IMG/VR virus record: IMGVR_UViG_3300035181_000471
Location: 1 to 64,000 of that record
Direction: 5' to 3' (one strand)
DNA: 64,000 nt
Numbering within the stretch: the first letter of the stretch is position 1; each line of letters begins with the position of its first letter. The notes under the pieces are model-generated. The model was not told the origin of the DNA. It saw only the letters and a program-made list of their open reading frames with translations, and searched no databases. Made by a program: the position numbers and the translations under genes. Positions 52,793-63,840 of this stretch are shown here, piece after piece.

Positions 52793-53536
52793 ATGAGAAA
52801 ATATACTTGGAAACCAGACATACCAGATTTTAGAGATCGTGCCTACAGCACAGTAGCTCCGACTGTTCTGCCGCCTTCGATAGACCTGAGGGCGTCATTT
52901 CCACCTTGTTATGATCAGGGTCAGCTAGGTTCATGCACAAGCAATGCTATCGCAGGAGATTGTGAATTTAATATGATTTTGCAGAAAGAGGACTCGTTTA
53001 CCCCTGCAAGACTGGGAATTTACTACTTAGAAAGAAGGCTAGAGGGGACTGTAAATCAGGATTCCGGGGCTCAGATCCGTGATGGAATTAAAGTTGTGGC
53101 TAAATATGGAGTATGGCCAGAAACGATGCAGCCCTACAATATTACCAAATTCAAAAAGGCACCCACAAATGCTATGTTGAAAATTGGGGCCACTCACCAA
53201 GCCCTCACTTACGAAAGATTAGATGGGAGTCTTCTTCAGATGAAGACTCGTTTGGCCTCGGGATTTCCTTTTGTCTTCGGGTTCACTGTATATGAGTCTT
53301 TTGAGTCTGCCACGGTTGCTAAGACAGGCATCGTCCCAATGCCCAAACCCACTGAAAGTGTTCTAGGAGGCCACGCTGTTTTGGCTGTTGGATATGATGA
53401 TTCCAAAAATGCGGTCCTGGTTAGAAATTCCTGGGGTTCTGGGTGGGGACTAAACGGCTATTTCTGGCTACCATATGATTACATCACTAATCCCAATTTA
53501 GCAGATGATATGTGGGCCATTTCCAGGATGAAGTAA
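52793..53536 (+). CDS. papain-like C1A cysteine protease (xylellain-like)
   Basis: DQG.LGSC, GGHAV..VGY, RNSWG..WG..GY. Confidence 0.93.
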   Translation: MRKYTWKPDIPDFRDRAYSTVAPTVLPPSIDLRASFPPCYDQGQLGSCTSNAIAGDCEFNMILQKEDSFTPARLGIYYLERRLEGTVNQDSGAQIRDGIKVVAKYGVWPETMQPYNITKFKKAPTNAMLKIGATHQALTYERLDGSLLQMKTRLASGFPFVFGFTVYESFESATVAKTGIVPMPKPTESVLGGHAVLAVGYDDSKNAVLVRNSWGSGWGLNGYFWLPYDYITNPNLADDMWAISRMK

Positions 53537-53654: not shown

Positions 53655-53729
53655 TGGCGGGGGATGAGAGATTCGAACTCCCAGGCGTGGATTTGGAGTC
53701 CACTCGTTTAGCCATTAACGGAATCCCCC
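53655..53729 (-). tRNA. tRNA-Trp(CCA)
   Basis: Cloverleaf, loop CT CCA AA, G73, CCA. Confidence 0.9.
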
Positions 53730-53754
53730 GTAACTAAATAAGAATAACATGAAT

Positions 53755-53829
53755 TGGAGCCTAAGGAGGGAGTTGAACCCTCTTTCCATCCTTACCAAAG
53801 ATGTGTAATAGCCGTTATACTACAGAGGC
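53755..53829 (-). tRNA. tRNA-Thr(GGT), two acceptor mismatches
   Basis: Loop TT GGT AA; acceptor GCCTCTG/CTTAGGC. Confidence 0.8.
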
Positions 53830-53835
53830 ATTGAG

Positions 53836-53856
53836 GTGAGGGGACTGCCCCCTCAC
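53836..53856 (-). terminator. GC-rich hairpin after the Pth-like gene
   Basis: GTGAGGGG/CCCCTCAC. Confidence 0.5.
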
Positions 53857-53862
53857 TAGGGA

Positions 53863-54474
53863 TTACAGAAGTTCGAAGTTTCTGTGGTACCAGAAACCGT
53901 CTTGGAAAGTGTTCATAATGGCAACAGCGGTAATCTTGTTGTCCATGTCTGGCTCTCTCCAAATTGTTTTGTATTCGCCAGGACCAGTCTTCCCAGAGAG
54001 ATCTTTGCTACTGGCGTAAGGACTAGTGTCCTTTTTAGGAGTCATTAGGATGAGAGTCCCATTGGTCCAAGGAGCGAGTGGATGCTCCTTTTGAAACTGT
54101 GCGGCGGCGTGACTAGCCTGGACAACCTTTTGTGAGGTCGAGAGACTTGGATCGACAACGATGTAAAGCTTTTTGGCTCCAGGGTTGTTGAGGTAGGTCT
54201 TGAAGTGTTGAATCCCGGCCTGCATTGGGGCTAGAAGGGCCTTGTATTCTCTTTGCTTGCCTTCGGTATAGGGTAGGGTCTCACAAGGGCCTTTAGCCTT
54301 GTGTCCCGCTAATCCGCGAATCAGAGCGCGATGCTCACTGAGAGCGATATGGAGCATTCTGATTTCGGTTCTAAGGCCACCTTGCTTCTTGTGCTTTTCG
54401 ATAAGCAGTCTGAGCAAGAGTCTAGCGTTGAAGTAAGCTTCTTTTTGTTCCTGAGTGTAAGTGACATAAGCCAT
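53863..54474 (-). CDS. Pth2-like peptidyl-tRNA hydrolase with N-terminal extension
   Basis: KLYIVV...LS..Q...Q.SHA and WREPD....TAVA; start trimmed to MAYV. Confidence 0.72.
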   Translation of the reverse strand: MAYVTYTQEQKEAYFNARLLLRLLIEKHKKQGGLRTEIRMLHIALSEHRALIRGLAGHKAKGPCETLPYTEGKQREYKALLAPMQAGIQHFKTYLNNPGAKKLYIVVDPSLSTSQKVVQASHAAAQFQKEHPLAPWTNGTLILMTPKKDTSPYASSKDLSGKTGPGEYKTIWREPDMDNKITAVAIMNTFQDGFWYHRNFELL

Positions 54475-54551
54475 GTTTTTCTCCTTTAGAATGGTTGGCT
54501 GGTTTGTTAGCGGCAACTTCTAAGGATGGCTTATGGTGAGCGTGATGGCAC

Positions 54552-54575
54552 CTAGAGGTGATTTCTCCCGGTCAT
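54552..54575 (-). promoter_or_regulatory. uORF MTGRNHL-amber upstream of the Pth-like gene
   Basis: AAGGAG-N6-ATG, TAG stop; next in-frame stop TAA at 54531. Confidence 0.5.
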
Positions 54576-54602
54576 ATTATACTCCTTTATGGTTAAGTAA
54601 AA

Positions 54603-54680
54603 TGGTGCCCTCGGAGGAATTCGAATCCCCGATCAAGGTTTTAGAGACCCCAGCTTTAGGCCAGACTAAGCTACGAGGGC
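54603..54680 (-). tRNA. amber suppressor tRNA (anticodon CTA)
   Basis: Perfect acceptor GCCCTCG/CGAGGGC, A73, loop CT CTA AA, TTCGAAT, CCA. Confidence 0.88.
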
Positions 54681-54687
54681 TAGTAAC

Positions 54688-55050
54688 CTAGACTTCTGGG
54701 ATGATTAGAGGCTCAATCTGGCTTAGATCATTGGGAGTCAACTTGACATCACCAAAGGCGGCAAGAGGGAGTGGTTCGAAGGGGACTTCAATCTCAGTGG
54801 TTAGAAGCTCGGTCATTGCGGCGGTAAAACCAGGACCATCTTCAGGTGAAAAGACGAACTGGGTCTTGTCATCATTCAACACACCGTTGAACTTCTCAAT
54901 GAGCTTCTGTCTTTCCGTGTCGAAAGTAGCCATCTCAGCGATCAGCACCTTGGCTAAACGAGAGATCTGGTATGATGTCTTAGTAGGGAACACCTTGTCG
55001 TAAATGGTTGAACCTAGAATGGACTGAATTTCTTGAATCTTTAGCTTCAT
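54688..55050 (-). CDS. hypothetical phage protein (DUF1617-like)
   Basis: P.K.SY.ISRL.K....E...F..ER.KLI.K pattern. Confidence 0.6.
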   Translation of the reverse strand: MKLKIQEIQSILGSTIYDKVFPTKTSYQISRLAKVLIAEMATFDTERQKLIEKFNGVLNDDKTQFVFSPEDGPGFTAAMTELLTTEIEVPFEPLPLAAFGDVKLTPNDLSQIEPLIIPEV

Positions 55051-55075
55051 GTTAACTCCTAAAATATGATACTGC

Positions 55076-55573
55076 TTAAACTGGTCTTTCTGGTCTCATA
55101 CCTTTAAATTTCTCTGGGTATGTTTTCAAAAGGAATTTTCTGGTTTCGGCTTCTTGCTTAAGCGCGCTTTTTTCAAGAGTTCGATCTTTCCAAGGAAGGT
55201 CTTTCTCTTCGTCTACAATGGAGATAAATCTATCAACTCCAAAAACTATATATGCATCGAAGGCGTGGTCTAGTTCGTGAGCGATAATTGGTTCAAGTTT
55301 TTCACGCTTCAAATTGATCTCGTTCCAGTCGAAAGTAATCTCGGCTCTATCATGGAAAATGGCGGTCTGGGCTAGTGTGTTACCCTTTAAATCCCCGATC
55401 TTCCAAGTGATAGGCACGGGAATGGCCTTTAATCTGGCGTTATCAGCGGGTGATAGCTGAAGTAGAGTTTCTAAAGCGGTCTGAATTTGTTGCTGTGGAG
55501 TAGGCTGAGGCTTACAAGTCACTAAAAGAAGGACCGTAAGGGTCGCCAGACATAGCTTGCTGAGTGTGTGCAT
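55076..55573 (-). CDS. putative lipoprotein with HExxH motif
   Basis: LLVTC lipobox; IAHELDH...LE..A. Confidence 0.6.
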   Translation of the reverse strand: MHTLSKLCLATLTVLLLVTCKPQPTPQQQIQTALETLLQLSPADNARLKAIPVPITWKIGDLKGNTLAQTAIFHDRAEITFDWNEINLKREKLEPIIAHELDHAFDAYIVFGVDRFISIVDEEKDLPWKDRTLEKSALKQEAETRKFLLKTYPEKFKGMRPERPV

Positions 55574-55613
55574 ATGAGCCTCAACATAGAAATAGAAATT
55601 AGTTATTTTTTTT

Positions 55614-55699
55614 TGGCGGAAGCGATAGGAATTGAACCTACAACCCTGTTACGGGCGACAGTTTTCGAGACTGCTTGTCATGCCAGTGACCACGCTTCC
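55614..55699 (-). tRNA. tRNA-Ser(CGA)
   Basis: Loop CT CGA AA, long V arm, G73. Confidence 0.9.
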
Positions 55700-55705
55700 G
55701 TGATA

Positions 55706-55888
55706 TTGTGACTCCACCGGACACGGTATTTCGCGCCAACCTAGTCCGAATCGAACGGATTATAGCCCCGAAAAGCTCTTTGGTTCTCCCGTAAGGAGTC
55801 AAGGCGTGAATGGACTTAGGAGGTCTGAATCGCATCTTATAGCCGTCTGCTAAACTGCATCTATTCAGTTCGTTCGTTCAGGTCACAA
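55706..55888 (-). ncRNA. unknown structured RNA, about 183 nt
   Basis: Terminal TTGTGAC/GTCACAA helix, internal hairpins including TCCG-TTCGATT-CGGA; fills the tRNA spacer. Confidence 0.55.
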
Positions 55889-55890
55889 AT

Positions 55891-55964
55891 TGGAGCGGGA
55901 TAGGGGGCTTGAACCCCTGACACTAGCTCGGCAAGCTAAAGTTTTACCACTAAACTAATCCCGC
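55891..55964 (-). tRNA. tRNA-Gly(GCC)
   Basis: Loop TT GCC GA, U73. Confidence 0.9.
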
Positions 55965-55966
55965 AA

Positions 55967-56054
55967 TGGCGGAAGATAAGGGAATCGAACCCTTTAGGCT
56001 GTTATACCTTCACTTTAGCAAAGTGACGCACCTCTCCAACTGTGCCGATCTTCC
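55967..56054 (-). tRNA. tRNA-Ser(GCT)
   Basis: Loop TT GCT AA, long V arm. Confidence 0.9.
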
Positions 56055-56060
56055 ATGATT

Positions 56061-56138
56061 TGGTAATCCCAGCGGGATTTGAACCCGCATTCTCACCTTG
56101 AGAGGGTGGCGTCCTGGCCTGAGTTAGACGATGGGACT
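56061..56138 (-). tRNA. tRNA-Glu(CTC)
   Basis: Loop CT CTC AA. Confidence 0.88.
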
Positions 56139-56142
56139 GTCG

Positions 56143-56964
56143 TTACTGGTGTATCTTGTGTCGCCTATCATTAAAGGAGAACTCAATATACTCTACTTTC
56201 TGGTTACCAGTGAATTTAGTCTTGAATTGTTCAATATATTTATTAGCTTTGCCCTTTTTGACATATGCTATTGTAGTATGAGGCGCATAGTCAGGGAATG
56301 AATTGGCGTTATCTGGGTAGACTTCATTGCAATAATCGAATAAATCCTGGAGTTCTGGACTCTTTTCAACCTTTATAATGAGAACATCGTATGGTGCATC
56401 AGCGGGAGTGAACTGGCTTAAACCTAACCACTCAACCGACTTGACTTCTAGGCTTGGGTTGAACTTGTCTGGTGTTTGGTCCTTAATTCCGTAGAGACAA
56501 GTAATGTGGGGGTAGTCCTCTTTTCCCTTGATCTCTCCATCGGTGTAGACATCCTCTGGATCAACACTTTCAACGAACTCTAGAATTTTCTTAGTGACCT
56601 CTGGAGCGTAAGTCAACTGCACTGTGCTGTAGTCGTAAGCGGCTTGCTTTGTAAGGAGTCTGGCGAAAAAGGTTAGGAACCCCTTTTTACCACCTTGGCC
56701 GTAAGCTCTATCGTGATCGCCTTGAACACTAAGAATGAACAAAACTCCTTCATCAACCTTACACACGGCTCTTATTCCTTGGGATACTCGGATGGAAAGG
56801 AAGCCTGGGTTAGACTTAATTGGTTCTAAGTGGGTTCCTGCCCCATCTCTTAGCTGTTGTTCAGTGGCCTCAGTGACTTTAATCCTCAGAGCATCAAGAA
56901 GACGCTTTATATTCGGATTCTTTTTTGCCTGTTTAGTAGCGTCTTTTCCAAGTTCCATTTGCAT
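56143..56964 (-). CDS. RelE/HigB-like domain fused to a 2H phosphoesterase (Acb1/T4 57B-like)
   Basis: N: HLEP....GFLSIRV..GIRAV.......H..Y; C: PHITCLYG and FPDY.PHTTIAY. Confidence 0.8.
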   Translation of the reverse strand: MQMELGKDATKQAKKNPNIKRLLDALRIKVTEATEQQLRDGAGTHLEPIKSNPGFLSIRVSQGIRAVCKVDEGVLFILSVQGDHDRAYGQGGKKGFLTFFARLLTKQAAYDYSTVQLTYAPEVTKKILEFVESVDPEDVYTDGEIKGKEDYPHITCLYGIKDQTPDKFNPSLEVKSVEWLGLSQFTPADAPYDVLIIKVEKSPELQDLFDYCNEVYPDNANSFPDYAPHTTIAYVKKGKANKYIEQFKTKFTGNQKVEYIEFSFNDRRHKIHQ

Positions 56965-56975
56965 GTAAAGCCCTC

Positions 56976-57131
56976 TTATTCAGCGATGTAGCCAGCCTTG
57001 CGAAGAGCCTGCTTACCGCCAGCCTTGCGAAGAGCCTTGTAATCTTCGATTTCCTTGTTGTAACGAGCAACCTGCTCAGCGGTCAGAACGATCTCAGGCT
57101 CAGCGGTCTTCTTGTTCTTTTCGTTGGTCAT
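56976..57131 (-). CDS. small basic protein, 51 aa, with an ALRKAG duplication
   Basis: Promoter copy plus GGAGG RBS; 20-bp direct repeat. Confidence 0.65.
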   Translation of the reverse strand: MTNEKNKKTAEPEIVLTAEQVARYNKEIEDYKALRKAGGKQALRKAGYIAE

Positions 57132-57147
57132 GTGTCCCTCCACTATT

Positions 57148-57178
57148 ATTATACCAGAGTTAAGTTGATTCTCTTACT
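57148..57178 (-). promoter_or_regulatory. putative phage promoter (AGTAAGAGAA-N13-GGTATAAT)
   Basis: Copy of the recurring motif. Confidence 0.6.
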
Positions 57179-57190
57179 AGAATTGAGAAG

Positions 57191-57358
57191 TTATTTGTTC
57201 CTGTGGGTCTTTTTCTTTCTGACCCCATGCCTAGGTTTGCGGGAAGCATTTTCATTGCGATGCCACTTGCAGTAGGGGCAACTGGCTTCTAGTTCTTTAT
57301 GCCTTTTGGCCCAGACCGTAGAGTTTTCGGTAGTGTCTAGTTCATTTTTGGCTTTCAT
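57191..57358 (-). CDS. small basic Zn-finger-like protein, 55 aa
   Basis: AGGAG RBS; CPYC..H; K/R-rich tail. Confidence 0.6.
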   Translation of the reverse strand: MKAKNELDTTENSTVWAKRHKELEASCPYCKWHRNENASRKPRHGVRKKKTHRNK

Positions 57359-57374
57359 AAAGCTCCTGGAATAA

Positions 57375-57465
57375 TGGGTCCGTCCTAGGGGAGTCGAACC
57401 CCTTGTGCGTAAAATTACGCTGTGGTTTAAAAGACCACGGCCTGAACCGTGCGGCAAAGGACGGA
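57375..57465 (-). tRNA. atypical tRNA, anticodon TTT (Lys), long variable arm, 8-bp acceptor
   Basis: GTGGT-CT TTT AA-ACCAC; V arm GCGTAA/TTACGC; TCCGTCCT/AGGACGGA. Confidence 0.8.
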
Positions 57466-57486
57466 TAATGGTGCTATTTGTGTTTT

Positions 57487-57560
57487 TGGTAGCCACTTGC
57501 AGAATCGAACTGCAAACTCTTCCATGTCGAAGAAGCGGTATCCCACTTACCTAAGCGGCT
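57487..57560 (-). tRNA. tRNA-Val(GAC), C33
   Basis: Loop TC GAC AT. Confidence 0.8.
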
Positions 57561-57645
57561 ATTTTAATTCACTGGGTAGTTGCATTCACCCATCCGGTAG
57601 GGACACCTGTTTTCAAAATCCCGGCTTGTCAAGCTCCTTTAATAG

Positions 57646-57730
57646 TGGTGCGGATAGAGGGAGTCGAACCCCCATGCCGTTAGGCGCTGGCTTCTAAGAC
57701 CAGTTTGTCTACCAATTCCAACATACCCGC
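57646..57730 (-). tRNA. tRNA-Leu(TAG)
   Basis: Loop CT TAG AA, long V arm. Confidence 0.92.
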
Positions 57731-57736
57731 ATCGAA

Positions 57737-57811
57737 TGGAGCCTCTAAGGGGAATCGAACCCCTATCGTCTGATTACGAAACAGACATAATTGCCATTAT
57801 ACTACAGAGGC
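57737..57811 (-). tRNA. tRNA-Thr(CGT)
   Basis: Loop TT CGT AA; T31-T39 mismatch. Confidence 0.88.
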
Positions 57812-57841
57812 AAGAAGTAATTTAGTTGTCCAGTTAAATGT

Positions 57842-57917
57842 TGGTGTGACATGGGGGTTATGATCCCCCTCCGCGACTTTCACAGAGTCGTGTGCATCCG
57901 ATTACACCTATGTCACC
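57842..57917 (-). tRNA. tRNA-His(GTG) with non-canonical T loop
   Basis: Loop CT GTG AA; encoded G-1 opposite A73; T loop ATCATAA. Confidence 0.8.
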
Positions 57918-57959
57918 GTCTGGGGAATGAAGGACCACCTGTCCTAAATTCCGATTCTA

Positions 57960-58038
57960 TGGCGGTTCGTACGGGATTTGAACCCGTGATCTTTTGCGTG
58001 ACAGGCAAATGGGGACGGCCAGACTCCCCTAACGAACC
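57960..58038 (-). tRNA. tRNA-Asp(GTC)
   Basis: Loop CT GTC AC, G73. Confidence 0.9.
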
Positions 58039-58040
58039 AT

Positions 58041-58117
58041 TGGTACCCCCGGTAGGACTCAAACCTACATAATTCACCGTGTAAAGATGATGCCTAATCT
58101 CTCGGCGTCACAGGGGC
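58041..58117 (-). tRNA. tRNA-Val(TAC)
   Basis: Loop TT TAC AC. Confidence 0.85.
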
Positions 58118-58125
58118 ATTGATGT

Positions 58126-58201
58126 TGGAGCCGAATATCAGAATTGAACTGATCTCTCTGCGTTACAAGGGCAGAATAATTATCCACTATACTAATCCGG
58201 C
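58126..58201 (-). tRNA. tRNA-Thr(TGT)
   Basis: Loop CT TGT AA; C31-C39 mismatch. Confidence 0.85.
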
Positions 58202-58208
58202 ATGATAT

Positions 58209-58279
58209 TGGAAGGGCTGTAGGGAATCGAACCCTATCTGTTCGCTTCAAAGGCGAATCTGTCATCCTGTCTCAACCCT
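58209..58279 (-). tRNA. tRNA-Gln(TTG) with degenerate D arm
   Basis: TTCGC-CT TTG AA-GCGAA, good T arm, no clear D stem. Confidence 0.7.
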
Positions 58280-58280
58280 A

Positions 58281-58378
58281 TGGTTTCACACCTGAGCCGT
58301 CAAGCCCCAATCTCCCTAGCCCATCAAGCCGTATGGAAGACAATCGCTAGACTGATGAGATCCGTGCGATAGTGTGAA
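58281..58378 (-). ncRNA. CCA-ended tRNA-like RNA without an anticodon arm
   Basis: TTCACAC/GTGTGAA plus ACCA; nested helices ATCTC/GAGAT, CTAGC/GCTAG, CCAT/ATGG. Confidence 0.6.
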
Positions 58379-58460
58379 TGGCTCTCCATGTAGGAATCGA
58401 ACCTACTTAGCTTGCGCGACTGGTTAACAGCCAGTTACCGACCCGGACAGTATATGGAGA
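58379..58460 (-). tRNA. atypical tRNA-Asn(GTT) with extended variable arm
   Basis: ACTGG-CT GTT AA-CCAGT; V region with GC-GCAA-GC. Confidence 0.78.
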
Positions 58461-58525
58461 ATGAATTTCTTAGATAGTGGCCGTTGATCCACTTACGCTC
58501 TGTCGCTCAGTGCAGAGTATCTGTT

Positions 58526-58601
58526 TGGTGCCTCAGATGGGAGTCGAACCCACAACCAATAGAGTAAGAGTCTACTGCTCGACCAATTGAGCTTCTGAAG
58601 C
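58526..58601 (-). tRNA. tRNA-Lys(CTT)
   Basis: Loop CT CTT AC, conventional fold. Confidence 0.88.
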
Positions 58602-58671
58602 ATAAATACAGCACCCGGCACACTGGCTCTTTTACGCATACGCGACCTGTAGCCTGACGGTGTTGTGATTT

Positions 58672-58733
58672 TGGTGGATACAGTGGGTATTGAACCCACC
58701 TAGGGAGCTACCCTACTCGCCTTGAGTGTACCC
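58672..58733 (-). ncRNA. 62-nt mini-tRNA with Ala identity
   Basis: GGGTACA/TGTATCC (G3.U70), A73, CCA, T arm TTCAATA, 5-nt loop TAGCT. Confidence 0.7.
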
Positions 58734-58738
58734 ATGAT

Positions 58739-58825
58739 CGGTGATCCCAAGGGGAGTCGAACCCCTACAGTCGAGGACGCCTGGGTAAGAGCCAGGGGTG
58801 GTAGCCAGTTGCCACTATTGGGACC
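58739..58825 (-). tRNA. atypical tRNA, anticodon CTT (Lys), long V arm, foldable as 8/4, no encoded CCA
   Basis: CCTGG-CT CTT AC-CCAGG; V arm GTC/GAC; GGTCCCAA/TTGGGATC; ends ACCG. Confidence 0.75.
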
Positions 58826-58902
58826 GTAATTTGCGGCTCTAGGAACCCATCTTCCTAAATTTGATCCTGTCATGCAGGAACCGCCTATTTTTAAAGTTGC
58901 CA

Positions 58903-59259
58903 CTATTTCCAGAGTTTAAAGTTGGTAATTTCATCTTCCGCATTGGAAAGAGCATCCTCAAGGGAGGAGACTTCGGTTTCAAGATGAGAGATACGGCCTT
59001 CAAGAACTGAGAGAACTATTGCAAGACGCTCGGAAACCGTTCCATTCCAAATACCTGGAGTGTCGGGGAACATCCCACAGAGGGGGAGAATCAAGTCACT
59101 GCACTTGGTAAAGTCAGCGTAGACGGCATCTACTTCGTCCAGGGCGACCATTGCTTCCTTGGTGAAGAGTAGCATCTCGTTGGACTCAGGGTCAAAACGA
59201 GTGAGATCCTTGATGTTCTCATCAAGAGCTTCTCGGATCAGTGCAAGCTTTTCGGACAT
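58903..59259 (-). CDS. hypothetical protein
   Basis: Promoter copy plus GGAGG; start trimmed to MSEK. Confidence 0.65.
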   Translation of the reverse strand: MSEKLALIREALDENIKDLTRFDPESNEMLLFTKEAMVALDEVDAVYADFTKCSDLILPLCGMFPDTPGIWNGTVSERLAIVLSVLEGRISHLETEVSSLEDALSNAEDEITNFKLWK

Positions 59260-59275
59260 GAGTGCCTCCATAGTT

Positions 59276-59306
59276 ATTATACTCGGAAGCTTCGTGTTTT
59301 CTTACT
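59276..59306 (-). promoter_or_regulatory. putative phage promoter (AGTAAGAAAA-N13-AGTATAAT)
   Basis: Same boxes and spacing as the copy at 1555. Confidence 0.65.
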
Positions 59307-59313
59307 GTTTATT

Positions 59314-59387
59314 TGGTGGAGCCGGGGAGAATCGAACTCCCGATATCTGGATGCAAACCAGAGGTTATCCCTCTTAACTACGACCCC
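59314..59387 (-). tRNA. tRNA-Ala(TGC)
   Basis: Loop TT TGC AT, G3.U70. Confidence 0.9.
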
Positions 59388-59392
59388 AAAGC

Positions 59393-59473
59393 TAGACACA
59401 TTGTTGGCATTCTTTGAAGAGGAACACGCCAAGACTCTTGTTCAGGGGTTATGGGTTGCTGTTGATGTGTCTA
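59393..59473 (-). ncRNA. ACAGCAAC hairpin element, copy A
   Basis: TAGACACAT/ATGTGTCTA closing stem then CAACAGCAAC. Confidence 0.55.
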
Positions 59474-59499
59474 AGGGCTTAAGCACTACACTTAGGCTT

Positions 59500-59573
59500 T
59501 GGAGCGGGTTACGAGATTCGAACTCGTTTCGACAGCTTGGAAGGCTGAGGCACAACCCATATACCAAACCCGC
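59500..59573 (-). tRNA. tRNA-Gly(TCC)
   Basis: Loop CT TCC AA. Confidence 0.9.
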
Positions 59574-59583
59574 TTAGGCTACT

Positions 59584-60282
59584 TCACTTCTTAATACTCA
59601 ACTTATCAAGCTCTCGATGAAGAGCTTTCAACTTTTTTGCGACTGCTGGAGCTTCCTCTTCCATAGTGTGTTCATGCCACTCTTGGCTAGGACTACTGTG
59701 TGAGTTAGTATTAAGATCCCACCACTTCTCAAGCTCGTCGATTTTAGCTTTAATTTTTTCGATCTTGTCTTTTCGAACCTCAGGGAATTCTTGGAAGGTG
59801 ATGGCGTAATCGTCCTTGTCACCCACATAGGTTCTTCCAAAGTTTACCCAGTTCTCAACATTTCTGAGTTCTTTGTAGTGTTGACCCCAGATGTAGTCTA
59901 CACCCAGCTTCTCAGGGATGGATCTTAGTTGTCTTCCTGCTCCGTAAGCACGGTATTCAGGTAGAACAAAGATTGCAACACCTTTGATACCAGTCTTGTT
60001 TTCCAAGCCGTGGACGCCTAGCTCAACTAAATCAGAGGCGGGTTTCTTCTCTTTCTTCAAGAAGTAGCCACCAATAATCTGTCCATCAGCAAGCGCAACA
60101 TAACAATTACTGAAGTTATTGCCCATTTCTTCTTTGATTTCAGTCTTTACATCCTCTTCTGATAGCCCTAAGGACTCTTTAAAGGACTTAAAACAGACAT
60201 TTAAAGCTTCAGCTACTTCGCTACGCTTCATCTTTCTGATCTGGATATCAAAGGCTGTCTTGGTGAGTAAGGTGGAAATCAT
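59584..60282 (-). CDS. GNAT-family acetyltransferase
   Basis: YVA..DGQIIG, IFVLPEYRAYGAGRQL motif A; start trimmed to MISTLL. Confidence 0.82.
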   Translation of the reverse strand: MISTLLTKTAFDIQIRKMKRSEVAEALNVCFKSFKESLGLSEEDVKTEIKEEMGNNFSNCYVALADGQIIGGYFLKKEKKPASDLVELGVHGLENKTGIKGVAIFVLPEYRAYGAGRQLRSIPEKLGVDYIWGQHYKELRNVENWVNFGRTYVGDKDDYAITFQEFPEVRKDKIEKIKAKIDELEKWWDLNTNSHSSPSQEWHEHTMEEEAPAVAKKLKALHRELDKLSIKK

Positions 60283-60319
60283 TGTGTTCTCTCTATTGAG
60301 AAATAGAAAGTTAAAAGAT

Positions 60320-60396
60320 TGGTAGTCCCAACGGGATTCGAACCCGTGATAGCCACATTGAAAGTGTGGTGCCTTAAGCCGCTTGGCTATGAGACT
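60320..60396 (-). tRNA. tRNA-Glu(TTC)
   Basis: Loop CT TTC AA. Confidence 0.9.
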
Positions 60397-60405
60397 ACGA
60401 ATTTG

Positions 60406-60505
60406 ATCATCTGGATGGAGTCGAACCATCGGCCACCCGGAGTCCCCTGCAATTTGGTCCTTAACCGTGAGAGGTGGTGCGCTCTGACCGCTGAGCTACA
60501 AATGA
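60406..60505 (-). ncRNA. tRNA-like RNA with expanded anticodon domain
   Basis: Canonical acceptor, D and T arms; about 50 nt between D and T arms; no CCA. Confidence 0.65.
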
Positions 60506-60506
60506 T

Positions 60507-60586
60507 TGGTGTCCGTGGTCGGATTCGAACCGACAGTCACGACCTTCTGAGGATCGTTGCGTTGCCAGAGATTAGCATACACGGAC
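60507..60586 (-). tRNA. tRNA-Leu(CAG) with short variable loop
   Basis: Loop CT CAG AA; V loop TGACT. Confidence 0.85.
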
Positions 60587-60591
60587 ATGAT

Positions 60592-60665
60592 TGGCGAGAG
60601 TGCCAGGGGTCAAACCGGGGCCAAAGATTTTGGAGACCTTCATGCTATCGTAACACCTCACTCCC
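60592..60665 (-). tRNA. tRNA-Trp(CCA), second copy, irregular T arm
   Basis: Loop CT CCA AA; T loop TTTGACC. Confidence 0.72.
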
Positions 60666-60754
60666 ATGAGTAAATTTTGCAGAGTTATTGGCATATCTGC
60701 AACCTCCTTATGCAAAACCTACTGCGATCCCTACTGGGATTCTAGGTGGAGTAT

Positions 60755-60831
60755 TGGTCGGCCACAAGTGATTCGAACACTTGACCCCTTGCTCCCGAAG
60801 CAAGTGCGCTACCAGACTGCGCCAGTGGCCG
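60755..60831 (-). tRNA. tRNA-Pro(CGG)
   Basis: Loop TT CGG GA. Confidence 0.92.
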
Positions 60832-60841
60832 TTAATTTTAT

Positions 60842-60928
60842 TGGTCGGTGTGACAGGAATCGAACCTGCGTTTGTCCCTAATGGACCTAGCACCCCAAGC
60901 TAGTGGTCAACCATTGACCCACACACCG
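60842..60928 (-). tRNA. atypical tRNA-Pro(GGG) with long variable arm
   Basis: Loop TT GGG GT; V arm GTCC-ATTAG-GGAC. Confidence 0.85.
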
Positions 60929-60957
60929 AATTTCGTAACTCTGAATGAAATTTGAAT

Positions 60958-61032
60958 TGGTCGGGGTGAGAGGAATTGAACCTCCTACTACTCCCATCCA
61001 AAGAGAGGCGTCTACCGATGACTTACACCCCG
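60958..61032 (-). tRNA. tRNA-Pro(TGG)
   Basis: Loop TT TGG AT. Confidence 0.85.
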
Positions 61033-61144
61033 GTATTTTTAAGATGAATGGGGACTTTTTAGTCTTTGGATTAGTTTTAGACCATCCACATTCACAACAC
61101 ACTGGCCCATGTTTTTTAATGAGCAAAGTTCTTTCATAGTTCAA
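61033..61144 (-). pseudogene. truncated HNH-endonuclease remnant
   Basis: R..LI.KHG..C.ECGW...NP.T.K.P resembles the segment preceding an HNH core; the frame runs into tRNA-Pro. Confidence 0.55.
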
Positions 61145-61154
61145 CCTACTTTAT

Positions 61155-61229
61155 TGGTAGCCCTACCTGGGATCGAACCAGAATCTAACGATTATCGGTC
61201 GTTTGCACTAGCCATTGTGCTATAGGGCC
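61155..61229 (-). tRNA. tRNA-Ile(GAT), C33
   Basis: Loop CC GAT AA. Confidence 0.85.
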
Positions 61230-61278
61230 AATTTGGAGGCGGTCCCTCCAGCAAAGAGGGCGCTTATCCGGCGTTGGC

Positions 61279-61354
61279 TGGTGGAGCCATCGGGAGTTCA
61301 ACCCGATCCACTAGACTGCGAAACTAGTATGCCACGCCTCAACACTTTGGCCCC
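61279..61354 (-). tRNA. tRNA-Ala(CGC)
   Basis: Loop TT CGC AG, G3.U70, T31-T39 mismatch. Confidence 0.8.
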
Positions 61355-61356
61355 AT

Positions 61357-61432
61357 TGGAGCGTCTGACCGGACTTGAACCGGCTCCCTGAGTTTGGAAG
61401 ACTCTAGTGCTACCATTAAACACCACAGACGC
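61357..61432 (-). tRNA. tRNA-Gly(TCC), second copy
   Basis: Loop CT TCC AA. Confidence 0.88.
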
Positions 61433-61440
61433 ATTGAAAT

Positions 61441-61516
61441 TGGTGGATCTGACAGGGATCGAACCTGCCACCTACTGGATGCAAACCAGTCGCTCTCCCA
61501 AATGAGCTACAGACCC
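61441..61516 (-). tRNA. tRNA-Ala(TGC), second copy
   Basis: Loop TT TGC AT, G3.U70. Confidence 0.92.
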
Positions 61517-61531
61517 GTGTTTGTCTCTTAT

Positions 61532-61610
61532 TGGTGCAGGTAACGGGAGTCGAACCCGCAAAAACACAGCCTTCTCAGAACTGCCGCAATACCAAATAGC
61601 GTATACCTGC
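61532..61610 (-). tRNA. tRNA-Leu(GAG) with short variable loop
   Basis: Loop CT GAG AA; V loop TGTTTTT. Confidence 0.83.
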
Positions 61611-61617
61611 ATAGATA

Positions 61618-61696
61618 CAAGACTCTCTTTTTTCAAGGCAGGATTACCTGCGGCATCCCCATTAACAGGAGAATTTTGGTTGCTGTAAGAGTCTTG
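61618..61696 (-). ncRNA. ACAGCAAC hairpin element, copy B
   Basis: CAAGACTCT/AGAGTCTTG stem then TACAGCAAC; two inner hairpins. Confidence 0.6.
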
Positions 61697-61770
61697 GTGC
61701 CTTAGGTTGGAGTTGAACCAACCACACAAGGATTTTCAGTCCTTTGCTCTACCACCTGAGCTACTAAGGC
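61695..61770 (-). tRNA. tRNA-Phe(GAA)
   Basis: Loop CT GAA AA. Confidence 0.93.
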
Positions 61771-61848
61771 ATGATAAAAATTTGCGAGTGTGACTTACAT
61801 TGACTCCCAAGGTCACACAGACTGTAAGCCTACCTTTTTTCACAAAAT

Positions 61849-61927
61849 TGGTGGAGGATACCGGAATCGAACCGATTTCTATTCCTTTTCAGGGAATCGC
61901 TGGAATGACCACACTAGCTCACCCTCC
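61849..61927 (-). tRNA. tRNA-Phe(GAA), second copy
   Basis: Loop CT GAA AA; large D loop. Confidence 0.82.
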
Positions 61928-61944
61928 ATGATATTTAGATGAAT

Positions 61945-62029
61945 TGGTGGAACATGATGGGAATCGAACCCATAACCTCTGCACGGCATTGCGCCCAAAC
62001 AGTGTGCTTACCAAAGCCACTTCAGCCCC
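61945..62029 (-). ncRNA. tRNA-like RNA with Ala-type acceptor and elongated anticodon arm
   Basis: GGGGCTG acceptor with bulge, G3.U70, ACCA, good T arm; no 7-nt anticodon loop. Confidence 0.65.
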
Positions 62030-62035
62030 ATATAT

Positions 62036-62110
62036 TGGTGGAGCTACGGGGAGTCGAACCCCGAACTTTTGGATGCCGTCCAAATGTGTTCCCGCTAGCA
62101 CTATAGCCCC
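62036..62110 (-). tRNA. tRNA-Ala(GGC), C33
   Basis: Loop AC GGC AT, G3.U70. Confidence 0.85.
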
Positions 62111-62117
62111 ATGATGC

Positions 62118-62191
62118 TGGCTCCAAAAAGGGGAATCGAACCCCTGTCTCTGACTTAACAGGTCAGCATCCTACCATTGGATGATTTTGGA
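62118..62191 (-). tRNA. tRNA-Asn(GTT), conventional
   Basis: Loop CT GTT AA, G73. Confidence 0.9.
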
Positions 62192-62270
62192 ATAGTAAGG
62201 TCTCTCCCTTGTCAAGCCTGGATGATTAGCGGCTTTCCCTCCGAGGTTGGGTTGGACAGTGAATCGTTTT

Positions 62271-62981
62271 TTAGATTGCCTTCACTATCTCATTCGCCTG
62301 ATTTTTACAAACCCAGGTGTCCAACTTTTTAAGGACTAATTGTCCATGATCAAATTCCCAATGACAGTTGGGGCAAAGACCAACCAGATTATCGGGGGCA
62401 TTGATTTCTTTCAGTGTAGCGGAATCTGGGAAACTCATTACTGCTTGAATATGGCAGACCTCCACATGCTTACTATACCCACAATTAAAACAAGAATCGG
62501 TCTTGTGGCAAACACTAGCTATTCTTTGAGCGTGTTTTGTTATAACAGACCTAGCTCTCTGCCAATTAGTGCCACCGGATTCAGATTTCCCAAATAACTC
62601 TAACTTTGTTACATGGTCTCTTTTCCCTTTTAGGGGGTCTTTCTCTGCTTTAATCTTAACTACTTTTTCCTTTTTAGGTCTAAGTTTGTTATTGTAAGAG
62701 GCCGCGCAAGAGGTGGAACAGAAAATCCCGCTTTTAGTCTGAGATGGGACTCTGTGAAACTGCTTGGAACAGTTAAAACAAGAGACCTCTAATCGAGTTA
62801 TGTTATGATCGTGAAAGCATCGTTGGGAGCAGAATAATTTGATTTGCCCTCGTCTTTTCGATATAATTAAGTTGGCCTTAGATTGAGTGGTCTCTTTCCC
62901 ACACTGCTCACAAACTACAGGAATGCGATCTTTGTATTTCTTGTCCTTATATTCGATCAGCAGCGTTTCTAGTTGAGTCAT
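62271..62981 (-). CDS. HNH homing endonuclease with N-terminal Zn ribbons
   Basis: CxxC/FCSxxC repeats; C..CGY...EVCHI...N..NL..LCPNCH. Confidence 0.88.
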   Translation of the reverse strand: MTQLETLLIEYKDKKYKDRIPVVCEQCGKETTQSKANLIISKRRGQIKLFCSQRCFHDHNITRLEVSCFNCSKQFHRVPSQTKSGIFCSTSCAASYNNKLRPKKEKVVKIKAEKDPLKGKRDHVTKLELFGKSESGGTNWQRARSVITKHAQRIASVCHKTDSCFNCGYSKHVEVCHIQAVMSFPDSATLKEINAPDNLVGLCPNCHWEFDHGQLVLKKLDTWVCKNQANEIVKAI

Positions 62982-63020
62982 AATTTCTCCCTCTATAATC
63001 AAGAGTTAGAAAGTCGATTT

Positions 63021-63097
63021 TGGTTGCGGGAGGTGGAATCGAACCACGCTTTCACTATGAGCTTATGAGACTCTAGGCCAACCTCTGGCCCCGCTAT
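63021..63097 (-). tRNA. tRNA(CAT), initiator-like 1:72 mismatch, irregular
   Basis: Loop CT CAT AA; A1/A72; lacks the three GC pairs of initiators. Confidence 0.68.
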
Positions 63098-63105
63098 AAT
63101 TTTAT

Positions 63106-63180
63106 TGGTCCTCCAGGCAGGAATTGAACCCGCACTTCATGGTTCGAAGCCATGTGTTCTATCCGTTATACTACTGGAAG
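63106..63180 (-). tRNA. tRNA-Arg(TCG)
   Basis: Loop CT TCG AA. Confidence 0.88.
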
Positions 63181-63189
63181 ATAATTTCT

Positions 63190-63307
63190 CGGCCTTGGGG
63201 TTGTGGCCCCTCGCTTGCGTCTGACTCCCTGCCATCAGTCAGAACCGTGTATAGAGCCGCTAAGTCTTCCTACCTACTCCATACGGAGAGGGGCTCTCTT
63301 GTGCGGC
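63190..63307 (-). ncRNA. candidate structured RNA, about 120 nt
   Basis: On the + strand: GGGG/CCCC, TCTGACT/AGTCAGA, AGAGCC/GGCTCT enclosing CTCC-ATAC-GGAG. Confidence 0.45.
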
Positions 63308-63308
63308 A

Positions 63309-63396
63309 TGGCGGAAGATACAGGAATCGAACCTGCTTGCCTTTGACAGCCCATGCTTTCCAGGCATGTGTGACGCTCCTACTTCACCGATCTTCC
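63309..63396 (-). tRNA. tRNA-Ser(GGA)
   Basis: Loop CT GGA AA, long V arm. Confidence 0.9.
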
Positions 63397-63525
63397 ATTC
63401 TATACTAGATACTGAAAGTTTTTCAATATCGTTTGGTGGTAATTTTAGAATTATTTTTTGTAAACAACTCAGACCTTTGCTCTTATTATCGGGCGGTCCG
63501 GCGAGAACCAATCTTCGTCTTTATG

Positions 63526-63603: not shown

Positions 63604-63611
63604 ATGATAAT

Positions 63612-63832: not shown

Positions 63833-63840
63833 ATAGAATC

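Follow-up and report, generated by a model that had tools for sequence, protein, structure and literature searches.

A jumbo phage encodes a single polypeptide in which a domain of the YoeB/RelE toxin type is joined to a 2H phosphoesterase. The gene lies in a window of 64,000 nucleotides, which is the whole stretch of DNA that was analysed. The reading favoured here, which has about an even chance of being correct, is that of a phage type II toxin-antitoxin-like cassette in a tRNA operon, with a YoeB/RelE-type nuclease tethered to an RNA-end-processing 2H enzyme. Both toxins of the RelE/YoeB type and 2H phosphoesterases are familiar proteins. A full-text literature search found no published case of the two in one polypeptide, and among 1.84 billion representative proteins the combination occurs in one small phage clade.

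The earlier note on this DNA had described an ATG-initiated, minus-strand ORF of 273 aa, and this ORF is present as described (Table 1). So are the motifs quoted from it: S57-I-R-V, G63-I-R-A, H84...Y88, L103-L-T-K-Q-A, H153-I-T-C-L-Y-G and H229-T-T-I-A-Y.

Table 1. Features of the cassette and its surroundings, in window coordinates.
Feature	Position	Strand	Evidence or remarks
tRNA array, 36 tRNAs	53655-63992	all (-)	Cassette embedded within
tRNA-Glu(CUC)	56061..56138	(-)	ARAGORN; downstream neighbour, same transcription direction
273-aa fusion ORF	56143..56964	(-)	ATG start, stop codon 56143-56145; toxin domain, hinge, 2H module
YoeB/RelE-superfamily domain, aa 1-88	56701..56964	(-)	AF2, Foldseek, VIA, PDB-sequence profile
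Putative catalytic residue E47	56824-56826		
Putative catalytic residue R59			
Putative catalytic residue R65	56770-56772		
Putative catalytic residue H84	56713-56715		
Putative catalytic residue Y88	56701-56703		
Hinge G89-Q-G-G-K-K-G95	56680..56700	(-)	Alignment of 8 fusions; pLDDT
2H phosphoesterase module, aa 96-273	56146..56679	(-)	Pfam, PHROG, Foldseek, PDB-sequence profile
HxT motif 1, H153-I-T155	56500-56508	(-)	
HxT motif 2, H229-T-T231	56272-56280	(-)	
51-aa antitoxin-like ORF	56976..57131	(-)	ATG at 57131, GGAGG upstream, TAA stop
tRNA-Lys(UUU)	57375..57465	(-)	ARAGORN; upstream neighbour of cassette

The toxin-like domain and its small upstream partner

The N-terminal domain is predicted with high confidence to have the RelE/ParE-superfamily toxin fold, closest to YoeB and RelE. 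Its AF2 model (pLDDT 85 overall, 90-95 over aa 1-80) has the order beta1-alpha1-alpha2-alpha3-beta2-beta3-beta4, followed by a catalytic tail that is poorly modelled at aa 84-97. The best Foldseek match in the PDB is YoeB (2a6r_C, E 2.9e-4, probability 1.00). The top 40 or so matches are all RelE, YoeB, YafQ, HigB or ParE proteins with probability 1.00, and the same proteins make up 50 of 50 VIA rows. VIA Z scores range from 9.5 to 8.0 for 30 RelE-superfamily entries, with 74-86 residues aligned. Z is 9.5 for T. thermophilus RelE (rmsd 2.0 A over 78 aa) and 9.0 for YoeB.

The sequence points the same way. A profile of the domain searched against PDB sequences places YoeB on top (E 0.02 and 0.043). 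In the HMM alignment, E47, R59, R65 and H84 align with YoeB E46, R59, R65 and H83, and the GxxxEPxK motif corresponds to YoeB GKPEPLK. Among 25 members of the family, R65 and Y88 are conserved in all 25, H84 in 24, E47 in 22 and R59 in 21; Y88 lies four residues past the catalytic histidine and not adjacent to it. Judged from these alignments, the domain retains the YoeB catalytic set E47, R59, R65, H84 and Y88, the roles of the YoeB residues being described in PMC3814384. By its fold and conserved residues the domain would be a ribosome-dependent nuclease. The earlier note had called it RelE/HigB-like and named a per-domain Foldseek comparison as the check. That comparison recovered the RelE superfamily, with a nuclease-type active site conserved; the HigB part of the label gives way to YoeB, which is nearer in sequence.

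Membership of a curated family was defined as a score above the Pfam or NCBIfam threshold. In a direct search no Pfam family reached threshold for the domain, and PHROGs and NCBIfam gave no match at all. The sub-threshold Pfam matches to ParE, HigB and YoeB families span E 0.002-0.1 overall. The best of them is ParE_like, at E 0.0019 in one homologue; the HigB and YoeB families give E 0.036-0.11, and ParE_toxin scores 14.5 bits against the window's domain, below its cut-off of 23. The domain falls below all curated thresholds and is therefore placed, on sequence grounds, in an uncurated, divergent toxin clade.

These weak matches to ParE_toxin and ParE_like, together with ParE structures among the fold matches (VIA Z 7.2-7.8), could be taken to mean that the domain is no RNase, but a ParE-like gyrase poison or a decayed scaffold toxin, with the 2H module as the sole active enzyme. 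This is very improbable: in fold as well as in sequence, RelE, YoeB, YafQ and HigB outscore ParE, and the domain keeps both the YoeB-type E/R/R/H/Y set and the motif corresponding to GKPEPLK.

A small ORF of 51 aa lies directly upstream of the fusion, where the earlier note had seen it while recognising no antitoxin. The ORF does behave as one. Its position is conserved, and modelling of the complex yields a score of 0.64 where the best control reaches 0.01; its product is thus very likely an antitoxin. An ORF of 49-62 aa occurs directly upstream of the fusion at every related locus with readable context (L001-L005 and the P0006 locus), and the window's copy is 56% identical to that of L004. 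In the window, 11 nt separate the stop codon of the small ORF from the ATG of the fusion, which has a Shine-Dalgarno-like AAGAGGG 6-7 nt before it. The related loci have a 10-nt overlap, a 1-nt gap or a 16-nt gap. Upstream of standalone toxin homologues there is likewise a tightly coupled ORF, which overlaps the toxin gene by 4 nt or is separated from it by 2 nt; it occurs in phage-like contigs and at 16 loci of Acidobacteriota, mostly with the 4-nt overlap. By sequence comparison, these proteins constitute an uncurated YoeB-like toxin family with chromosomal members in Acidobacteriota; in phages its antitoxins are minimal, with about 50 aa.

The complex score is the ipSAE of a model of the 51-aa product with the N-terminal domain. 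Three runs gave 0.62-0.65 and shared at least 80% of contacts, with a partner pLDDT of at least 74; the best of the three controls is the one at 0.01. Of 80 solved complexes 58 attain this mark, as do 2 of 110 mismatched pairs; the two counts apply here only approximately, since own alignments were used. The score may in part be the model's memory of solved toxin-antitoxin pairs. The predicted interface involves toxin residues 49-57 and 65-81, including K50 and R65, and the predicted contacts cover the beta-sheet/active-site face of the toxin domain.

In its arrangement the cassette resembles type II toxin-antitoxin systems: next to the toxin gene, and in the same orientation, lies a small, closely coupled gene whose product is predicted to bind the toxin. 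Searches for the DNA-binding, autoregulating side of a type II antitoxin were blank. The 51-aa ORF has no match in Pfam or NCBIfam and no recognisable DNA-binding domain, and signal counts for a promoter or operator between tRNA-Lys(UUU) and the small ORF are at chance level. Because no promoter-like signal rises above chance there, the tRNAs of the array and the cassette probably share a transcript. In bacterial relatives the partner is a 91-aa protein with an additional N-terminal half. An AbrB-like nature of this N-terminus was considered, but is an impression only, since Pfam, NCBIfam and PDB profile searches were all blank.

The 2H phosphoesterase module and the hinge

The C-terminal module belongs to the 2H phosphoesterases and retains its two HxT motifs, a claim of the earlier note that sequence and Foldseek bear out. 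The motif residues H153, T155, H229 and T231 do not vary among 20 homologues, and the module is accordingly predicted to be catalytically intact. All 20 homologues match PF13563. The module itself matches PHROG 755 ‘RNA ligase’ at 2.4e-6, and stays below the cut-offs of Pfam 2_5_RNA_ligase2 (21.7-23.5 bits, cut-off 27) and TIGR02258 (20 bits, cut-off 65.7). In Foldseek, the best 35 PDB matches are all 2H enzymes with probability 1.00. They include a plant CPDase (5.9e-6), the phage BCSR5 PDE (6.2e-6) and Acb1 (1.6e-5); penguinpox cGAMP PDE, Usb1 and LigT are further matches. For the Acb1 structures 7T26/7T27 the target-normalised TM-scores are 0.54-0.56, with an rmsd of about 7 A. A literature search found no paper on the BCSR5 enzyme.

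Acb1 hydrolyses 3'3'-cGAMP, cUA or cAAA and relieves CBASS defence; a C-terminal lid closes over its cyclic-oligonucleotide pocket (PMC9117128). One rather unlikely explanation of the fusion, which is the inference of the earlier note, is that its halves do two unrelated jobs: an Acb1-type 2H domain would destroy CBASS or other cyclic-oligonucleotide signals, and the RelE-like domain would separately shut off translation. PF23474 (Acb1) leads the Pfam matches but stays under its cut-off of 27 (22.9 bits for the full protein, 24.7 bits for the C-terminal domain). In a profile search against PDB sequences, the best match is 9q2g_A, deposited as ‘Anti-CBASS protein Acb1’ (1.8e-5), and the top fold matches include Acb1 as well as poxvirus cGAMP phosphodiesterases. 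The Acb1 proteins (T4 gp57B; FBB1, 7T26/7T27; BCSR5, 9Q2G) are also phage-encoded, share the 2H fold and employ the same HxT/HxT tetrad (PMC9117128). T4 acb1 likewise lies near a tRNA cluster; gene 57B, which the earlier note had put beside it, is about 1.4 kb away. Finally, the 2H module has standalone homologues.

Several differences count against this explanation. With hhalign, only a local match to T4 57B emerges (30 columns, 49% probability). In BFVD, phage proteins named ‘2'-5' RNA ligase superfamily’ match the module better than those named Acb1. Acb1 is compact, with about 150 aa (PMC9117128), whereas the module has about 178 aa, with an additional N-terminal helix and strand. The explanation by unrelated jobs also leaves the conserved nuclease fusion unexplained. 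Of the earlier label ‘Acb1-like’, then, a sub-threshold resemblance stands, while the module resembles T4 Acb1 less than it does uncharacterised phage proteins named ‘2'-5' RNA ligase superfamily’; unlike Acb1, it is fused to a toxin domain.

The two domains meet at a short flexible segment. The full-length AF2 model has a pLDDT of 90.3 and a pTM of 0.62, and its confidence is low only around aa 85-110. Both domains fold with pLDDT above 90, and both have Foldseek probability 1.00 to their fold classes. The true inter-domain hinge is G89-QGGKKG-95. Residues G89, G91, G92, K93, K94 and G95 are invariant in all eight fusions, pLDDT drops below 50 at aa 93-95, and the ‘GQGG’ segment is missing from standalone toxins. 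The earlier note had placed the joint at LLTKQA, which instead belongs to the N-terminal amphipathic helix of the 2H module (aa 96-106). This helix is common to standalone 2H homologues: P0009 and P0010 begin MKFTSSLLNK, the equivalent helix. The term ‘polyprotein’, also used earlier, does not fit either, as a search of the fusion for a protease or cleavage signal found only the Gly/Lys hinge.

Identity among the fusions is 46-89% in the N-terminal and 51-84% in the C-terminal domain, and this similar conservation argues that both domains are under constraint. In YoeB the catalytic H83 and Y84 are located at a free C-terminus, which moves on the ribosome. In the fusion the catalytic tail is followed without a break by a domain of 20 kDa, and this might make it harder for the protein to enter the A site.

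Distribution and genomic setting

The fusion is rare. Eight proteins were found, with 51-100% identity, each encoded by a single ORF and coming from independent assemblies. All eight belong to one syntenic phage lineage and are always found within a tRNA array. In the window, tRNA-Glu(CUC) starts 4 nt after the fusion stop codon, and a tRNA is located 4-5 nt past the stop in L001, L003, L004 and L005 as well. An alignment-based locus search found no related loci among genome representatives. A near-identity DNA search of GenBank phages with 12 kb around the gene gave tRNA-sized matches only. A BFVD entry of 1030 aa, A0A6J5RHA8, gave an alignment of 283 columns.

Homologues of the separate domains were also collected. 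A word-indexed search with the N-terminal domain alone gave no match, and its standalone relatives were recovered only by exhaustive profile search, which found no other fusion partner for it among the 1.84 billion representatives. Two proteins from that search, P0046 and P0051, are repetitive false positives and were dropped. The standalone 2H homologues P0009 and P0010 have no RelE-like neighbour, which indicates that the 2H module has a function of its own. A split toxin upstream of standalone 2H genes was also considered; the 84-aa ORF in L006 proved unrelated (hhalign probability 0.7%).

The position of the gene within a 36-tRNA array could suggest a role in RNA repair or ribosome rescue. 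Here the RelE-like domain would chiefly dock the protein on ribosomes that host nucleases have jammed, occupying their A site, and the 2H domain would heal 2',3'-cyclic phosphate ends on damaged tRNA or mRNA ahead of ligation; jumbo phages have been proposed to clear cyclic ends with 2H enzymes in RNA repair (PMC7824862). Such a role is decidedly improbable. A docking module would need neither the strictly conserved nuclease residues nor the antitoxin-like partner that has been retained. Furthermore, the standalone relatives of the domain are classical toxin-antitoxin pairs in bacterial chromosomes, and neither an RNA ligase nor a polynucleotide kinase was seen among 29 scanned ORFs of the window, whose 64 kb are part of a contig measuring at least 221 kb.

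Two other features may be mentioned. The phage encodes a tRNA with a CUA anticodon; recoding of amber codons is not evident in the window, as TAG terminates 10 of its 58 ORFs. A 217-aa neighbour (53863-54516) was considered as a PTH2-like peptidyl-tRNA hydrolase, an assignment without PDB or Pfam support, its sole match being PHROG 3668 ‘hydrolase’ (E 0.0013).

A possible mechanism and related systems

The reading as a tethered toxin and RNA-end-processing enzyme suggests a sequence of events. While bound, the 51-aa minimal antitoxin would lie across the beta-sheet/active-site face of the toxin domain, and the flexible GQGGKKG hinge would tether that domain to the 2H phosphoesterase. Once released from the antitoxin, the N-terminal domain would enter the ribosomal A site. 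It would then cut the mRNA through attack by the 2'-OH, with E47 as base, H84 as acid and R59, R65 and Y88 stabilising, leaving a 2',3'-cyclic phosphate or a 3'-phosphate end. Finally, the tethered 2H domain would open the cyclic phosphate or trim the end further. With the end processed in this way, the damage could be neither resealed by RtcB-type ligases nor sensed via cyclic-phosphate-terminated RNA. In its broadest form, the reading lets the fused enzyme process either RNA ends or cyclic nucleotides. The biological role would be host shut-off, anti-repair or anti-signalling, and the phage would benefit through translation shut-off or competition.

Parts of this chemistry have precedents. 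The product of RelE-type cleavage carries a 2',3'-cyclic phosphate, which is an intermediate in YoeB-type cleavage (PMC3814384); 2H enzymes process such ends (PMC5512222), and the RtcR/RtcB repair operon is switched on by RNA ends of this kind (PMC7790460). LigT/ThpR, YjcG and plant CPDase have the fold and motifs in common with the module, PF13563 being found in all its homologues. Their opening of 2',3'-cyclic phosphates is the chemistry that the tethered-nuclease model requires, although sequence identity is very low (9-17%). On the other hand, YoeB can hydrolyse its cyclic intermediate unaided, and the need for a helper 2H domain is thus not obvious.

A more specific version of the model is a ‘cut-and-cap’ toxin, in which the fused 2H domain rewrites the cyclic ends made by its own nuclease, for instance to a 2'-phosphate, and so blocks both RtcB resealing and RtcR/CARF sensing. 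This version is unlikely. If true, it would be the first toxin of a toxin-antitoxin system with a built-in anti-repair or anti-sensing activity, and a jumbo phage would be making host translation shut-off irreversible and silent.

The architecture joins a maker of cyclic-phosphate RNA ends, if the toxin domain acts as proposed, to the class of enzyme that processes them. Three matters would thus become open to direct testing: by what means phages govern the chemistry of RNA damage, whether an infected cell repairs or senses a break according to the chemistry of the RNA end, and what purpose toxin-antitoxin cassettes have in lytic jumbo phages.

Among the closest known systems to the cassette are YefM-YoeB and RelBE. 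They have a toxin of the same fold and size (about 85-90 aa) and a small, translationally coupled upstream gene whose product, in the window, is likewise predicted over the active-site face; the fusion has equivalents of YoeB E46, R59, R65, H83 and Y84. The window's cassette differs in that the similarity of its toxin stays under every family threshold and its antitoxin has just 51 aa, without a detectable DNA-binding domain. Further, the catalytic tail continues into a 178-aa 2H phosphoesterase, and the genes belong to a phage tRNA operon instead of having their own autoregulated promoter.

Another example of a RelE-fold fusion is Cami1 (8PHJ), a CARF-RelE protein of type III CRISPR systems that aligns to the N-terminal domain at VIA Z 7.2. 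It also combines a ribosome-dependent RNase of the RelE fold with a domain that handles cyclic oligonucleotides. Cami1, however, acts as an effector of host defence, and its CARF sensor precedes RelE; the window's protein is encoded by a phage, and in it a 2H hydrolase follows the toxin domain.

Coupling of 2H domains to RNases is also known from phage polyvalent proteins (PMC5512222). Outside the fusion clade, the nearest relatives of the C-terminal module are 2H-DEDD exonuclease fusions (P0012-P0032, about 438 aa), which are 34-38% identical to it. There the partner is an exonuclease (PF00929) and lies C-terminal to the 2H domain. These relatives suggest that this clade of 2H enzymes works with RNA-cutting partners.

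The toxin domain and the 2H module

Direct family searches with the fusion's N-terminal domain (residues 1-88) gave blank or weak matches. AlphaFold2, given an alignment of 25 sequences, models residues 1-80 at pLDDT 90-95, in the order beta1, alpha1, alpha2, a short helix and three antiparallel strands; the tail (residues 84-97) is ill-defined. In a Foldseek search of the PDB, the best 40 or so matches are all RelE, YoeB, YafQ, HigB or ParE toxins, headed by E. coli YoeB (2a6r_C, E 2.9e-4, probability 1.00). Structural alignment with VIA-align pairs the domain with Thermus RelE (Z 9.5, rmsd 2.0 Å over 78 residues), M. tuberculosis RelE3 (Z 9.4) and YoeB (Z 9.0), and all 50 entries listed are RelE-superfamily toxins. 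The RelE-type fold proposed in the earlier note is thus borne out by both methods. Cami1, a CARF-RelE fusion, has this superfamily fold in common with the domain (Z 7.2).

A profile search of PDB sequences also puts YoeB on top (E 0.02 and 0.043), and the alignment pairs E47, R59, R65 and H84 with YoeB E46, R59, R65 and H83. In YoeB on the ribosome, E46 acts as general base and H83 as general acid, the transition state is stabilised by R59 and R65, and the mRNA is oriented by Y84 (PMC3814384). Within the 25-member family of the domain, R65 and Y88 are invariant, H84 occurs in 24 members, E47 in 22, with His in the remaining three, and R59 in 21, with Lys in a further two. These conserved, YoeB-aligned residues suggest a divergent, uncurated toxin of the YoeB/RelE type with a complete putative RNase active site. 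Judged by its sequence, the domain is not a decayed remnant.

In the full-length model (pLDDT 90.3, pTM 0.62), confidence is low only around residues 85-110, a pattern that indicates, as far as prediction goes, a pair of rigid domains joined by a flexible tether. The best 35 Foldseek matches of the C-terminal module (residues 96-273) in the PDB are all 2H phosphoesterases, including Arabidopsis CPDase (5.9e-6), the Burkholderia phage BCSR5 phosphodiesterase (6.2e-6) and phage FBB1 Acb1 (1.6e-5). Further fold matches are penguinpox cGAMP phosphodiesterase, Usb1, YjcG, AKAP18 and LigT. H153, T155, H229 and T231 are invariant across 20 homologues, and all 20 match PF13563 (best 4.5e-13) and PF23474, the Acb1 family (best 5.4e-8). 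Fold, invariant HxT residues and profile matches make membership in the 2H superfamily certain.

Membership in the Acb1 family is not established. By sequence, the closest solved relative is 9q2g_A (E 1.8e-5), which carries the deposition title 'Anti-CBASS protein Acb1'; YjcG and FBB1 Acb1 come next at about 0.05. The window's own domain falls below the 27-bit cut-offs of PF13563 and PF23474, and its profile aligns with T4 gp57B in the region of the second HxT motif only (49% probability). Among the viral structures of BFVD, Acb1-named entries rank below '2'-5' RNA ligase superfamily' proteins of phages, one of which, from Maribacter phage Colly_1, has TM 0.73. Of the name 'Acb1-like 2H phosphoesterase' first given to the module, the second half stands on the fold and both HxT motifs, and the first is undercut by the PF23474 score and the gp57B alignment. 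The model proposed with that name, in which the module breaks down immune signals independently as an Acb1-type enzyme, would suit the title of 9q2g_A and is rather unlikely.

Among viral structures, the full-length model matches BFVD A0A6J5RHA8_3 best (E 3.8e-11), a fragment of a protein of 1030 aa from an 'uncultured Caudovirales phage'. Since it aligns over 283 columns, it may hold more than the 2H domain.

The hinge between the domains is the invariant G89-QGGKKG-95. It is followed by an amphipathic helix (residues 96-106), which standalone 2H proteins carry at their N-termini. The sequence LLTKQA, formerly taken for the joint, sits in this helix. Several phage toxins that stand alone end in a recognisable form of the helix, KKG-x-F-x-F-x-A-x-LL. 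A helix common to both kinds of standalone protein points, in sequence terms, to a history of fusion or fission of the gene types.

Distribution of the fusion

A homologue search found eight full-length fusions (P0001-P0008; 272-275 aa, 51-100% identity) in independent metagenome assemblies. A syntenic block of 5'-nucleotidase, IMPDH and glycosyltransferase genes surrounds the fusion gene in all readable loci (L001-L005 and the P0006 locus), and the gene lies inside a tRNA array in 4 of 4 loci with DNA (L001, L003-L005). An exhaustive profile search with the N-terminal domain through 1.84 billion representative proteins returned 17 genuine standalone relatives (89-121 aa) and one fusion, P0004; two repetitive proteins were dropped as non-genuine. 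At the level of sequence, this search shows the fusion to be confined to one small clade. The fusion is real and rare.

No paper describing a RelE-superfamily/2H fusion turned up in a full-text literature search. Reviews on jumbo-phage conflict systems and on 2H domains in phages, PMC5512222 and PMC7824862 among them, place 2H alone, in polyvalent proteins or near ligases, and a 2H domain fused to a RelE-type toxin is absent from their retrieved passages. Toxin-antitoxin systems and phage 2H enzymes are known already; their combination in one cassette is, by these searches, new.

Three proteins of 185-198 aa (P0009-P0011) consist of the C-terminal module alone, starting at about residue 97. 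Genes for flagellin, FlaG, FliD and FliS precede the P0010 gene by a few kb, and the contig also carries phage-like genes (SLT, Peptidase_M15 and a 1244-aa protein). The next relatives of the 2H part, at 34-38% identity, are proteins of about 438 aa in which the 2H domain precedes a DEDD exonuclease (PF00929). They belong to a populous family (P0012-P0032) that has a 2H domain of the same clade in the N-terminal part and a DEDD/RNase T-type exonuclease after it, some members being on contigs of 181-215 kb. This other RNase-2H combination may merit study.

A candidate antitoxin and the possible action of the cassette

All motifs quoted in the earlier note are found in the 273-aa ORF, and the small ORF it placed upstream is real. 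The automatic ORF listing extends the latter to 55 aa from an earlier GTG. The ATG of the fusion gene has a Shine-Dalgarno-like AAGAGGG ahead of it. Wherever the surroundings of the fusion gene could be read, an ORF of 49-62 aa lies directly 5' of it, across gaps of 11 nt (window), 1 nt (L004/L005) and 16 nt (P0006 locus) or with a 10-nt overlap (L001-L003). Between the window ORF and its L004 and L001 copies identity is 56% and 27%; the toxin domains of the same pairs are 64% and 46% identical, so the small ORF evolves faster.

Standalone toxins have upstream ORFs as well. P0034, on a 305-kb phage-like contig, follows a 59-aa ORF with a 4-nt overlap, and P0036 follows a 51-aa ORF after a 2-nt gap. 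Upstream of P0039 and of 15 relatives, in genome bins of Holophagaceae, Geothrix and Thermoanaerobaculia, lies a conserved ORF of about 89-91 aa, which in most of these Acidobacteriota loci shares 4 nt with the toxin gene (the L019 copy is truncated at the contig end). The C-terminal part of this bacterial partner (KDYKAGRTVGVKALDAKL) resembles the phage 51-aa ORF (EDYKALRKAGGKQALRKAG). In this chromosomal pair (L012, L016-L030) the ORF is followed by a 92-aa YoeB-like toxin; Pfam and NCBIfam models match neither protein.

Complex prediction for the 51-aa product and the N-terminal domain gave ipSAE 0.64 (runs 0.62, 0.65 and 0.64); the best of three controls reached 0.01. The partner has pLDDT of at least 74, and the runs agree in at least 80% of contacts. 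Of 80 solved complexes 58 pass the mark applied, as do 2 of 110 mismatched pairs; these counts are approximate here, custom alignments having been used. The confident predicted interface on the toxin comprises residues 2-7, 49-57 and 65-81, the sheet face bearing K50 and R65. The model supports binding of the 51-aa product to the domain, and the pass may in part echo toxin-antitoxin complexes of known structure that the model has learnt. This makes the ORF a candidate antitoxin. Pfam and NCBIfam detected no DNA-binding domain in it, and no promoter signal above chance was found upstream; the transcript of the tRNA operon probably serves for its expression.

Cleavage of the RelE/YoeB type is metal-independent and proceeds via 2'-OH attack; RelE ends at a 2',3'-cyclic phosphate, and YoeB continues to a 3'-phosphate (PMC3814384). 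Enzymes of the 2H type act on just these ends, or cut cyclic and 2'-5' oligonucleotides (PMC5512222, PMC9117128). The best-supported reading, to which we give an even chance, is a neutralisable nuclease with a tethered 2H enzyme; what the analysis shows is the anatomy, from which we infer the activities and the benefit to the phage. The cassette would produce a ribosome-dependent mRNA nuclease open to neutralisation, and the tethered 2H domain would work on the RNA ends so made, which would leave the damage unrepairable or invisible. The conserved active site and the antitoxin candidate disfavour two rivals: that the protein is a repair or rescue device, which is improbable, and that the N-terminal domain is not a nuclease, which is more improbable still.

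The tRNA array and the wider genome

The cassette lies within a tRNA array, 36 genes packed in about 10 kb (53655-63992), every one of them on the minus strand. tRNA-Glu(CUC) follows the stop codon of the fusion gene by 4 nt, and tRNA-Lys(UUU) lies upstream of the cassette. Unusually long tRNAs are tRNA-Lys(UUU) (91 nt), tRNA-Lys(CUU) (86 nt) and tRNA-Tyr (94 nt); the L003 array has one predicted tRNA with a four-base anticodon (ttaa). An amber-suppressor-type (CUA) tRNA is conserved across the arrays of this phage lineage. TAG terminates 10 of 58 window ORFs, so stop-codon recoding is not evident in the window.

Features of the window and of related tRNA arrays
Feature	Position	Strand	Remarks
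Fusion ORF	56143-56964	-	273 aa, ATG start
Small upstream ORF	56976-57131	-	51 aa, ATG preceded by GGAGG; ends 11 nt before fusion ORF
CUA-anticodon tRNA	54603-54680 (window); L001 8595-8670; L003 3781-3856; L004 4705-4780	- (window)	ARAGORN: tRNA-Pyl
101-aa listed ORF	57191-57496	-	overlaps tRNA-Lys(UUU)
281-aa ORF	59584-60429	-	weak GNAT match, E 0.0012; 5' end overlaps tRNA-Glu(UUC)
217-aa ORF in tRNA array	53863-54516	-	C-terminal half resembles PHROG 3668 'hydrolase', weak, E 0.0013
165-aa ORF between tRNA genes	55076-55573	-	lipoprotein-like signal (…LLVTC), HExxH-type motif (AHELDHAF)
HNH endonuclease with zf-FCS/TRASH zinc finger, in tRNA array	62271-63002	-	
1562-aa protein	21352-26040	-	ends in zf-FCS/TRASH-type zinc finger; otherwise without match
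Papain-family cysteine protease	52793-53536	+	PF00112, 5e-14

The 101-aa ORF is probably spurious, and the 281-aa ORF, given its overlap, probably starts further downstream. The 217-aa ORF was considered as a PTH2 peptidyl-tRNA hydrolase for its 'VVQASHAAAQF' resemblance, and this was rejected for want of a Pfam or PDB sequence match. The 165-aa ORF matches Peptidase_M76 weakly (E 0.21). Related loci have up to three HNH genes among their tRNAs.

At 221,217 bp, the source record makes the element a jumbo phage. A near-identity DNA search with 12 kb around the fusion gene found no close relative among GenBank phages. Other genes of the window specify a family-A DNA polymerase, an SNF2 helicase and a RecA-like protein, an IMPDH/GMP-reductase-family protein, a 5'-nucleotidase and glycosyltransferases, as well as an SLT lysozyme and an HNH endonuclease. 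The papain-family protease is the sole clear plus-strand gene of the window and is kept in the P0006 locus.
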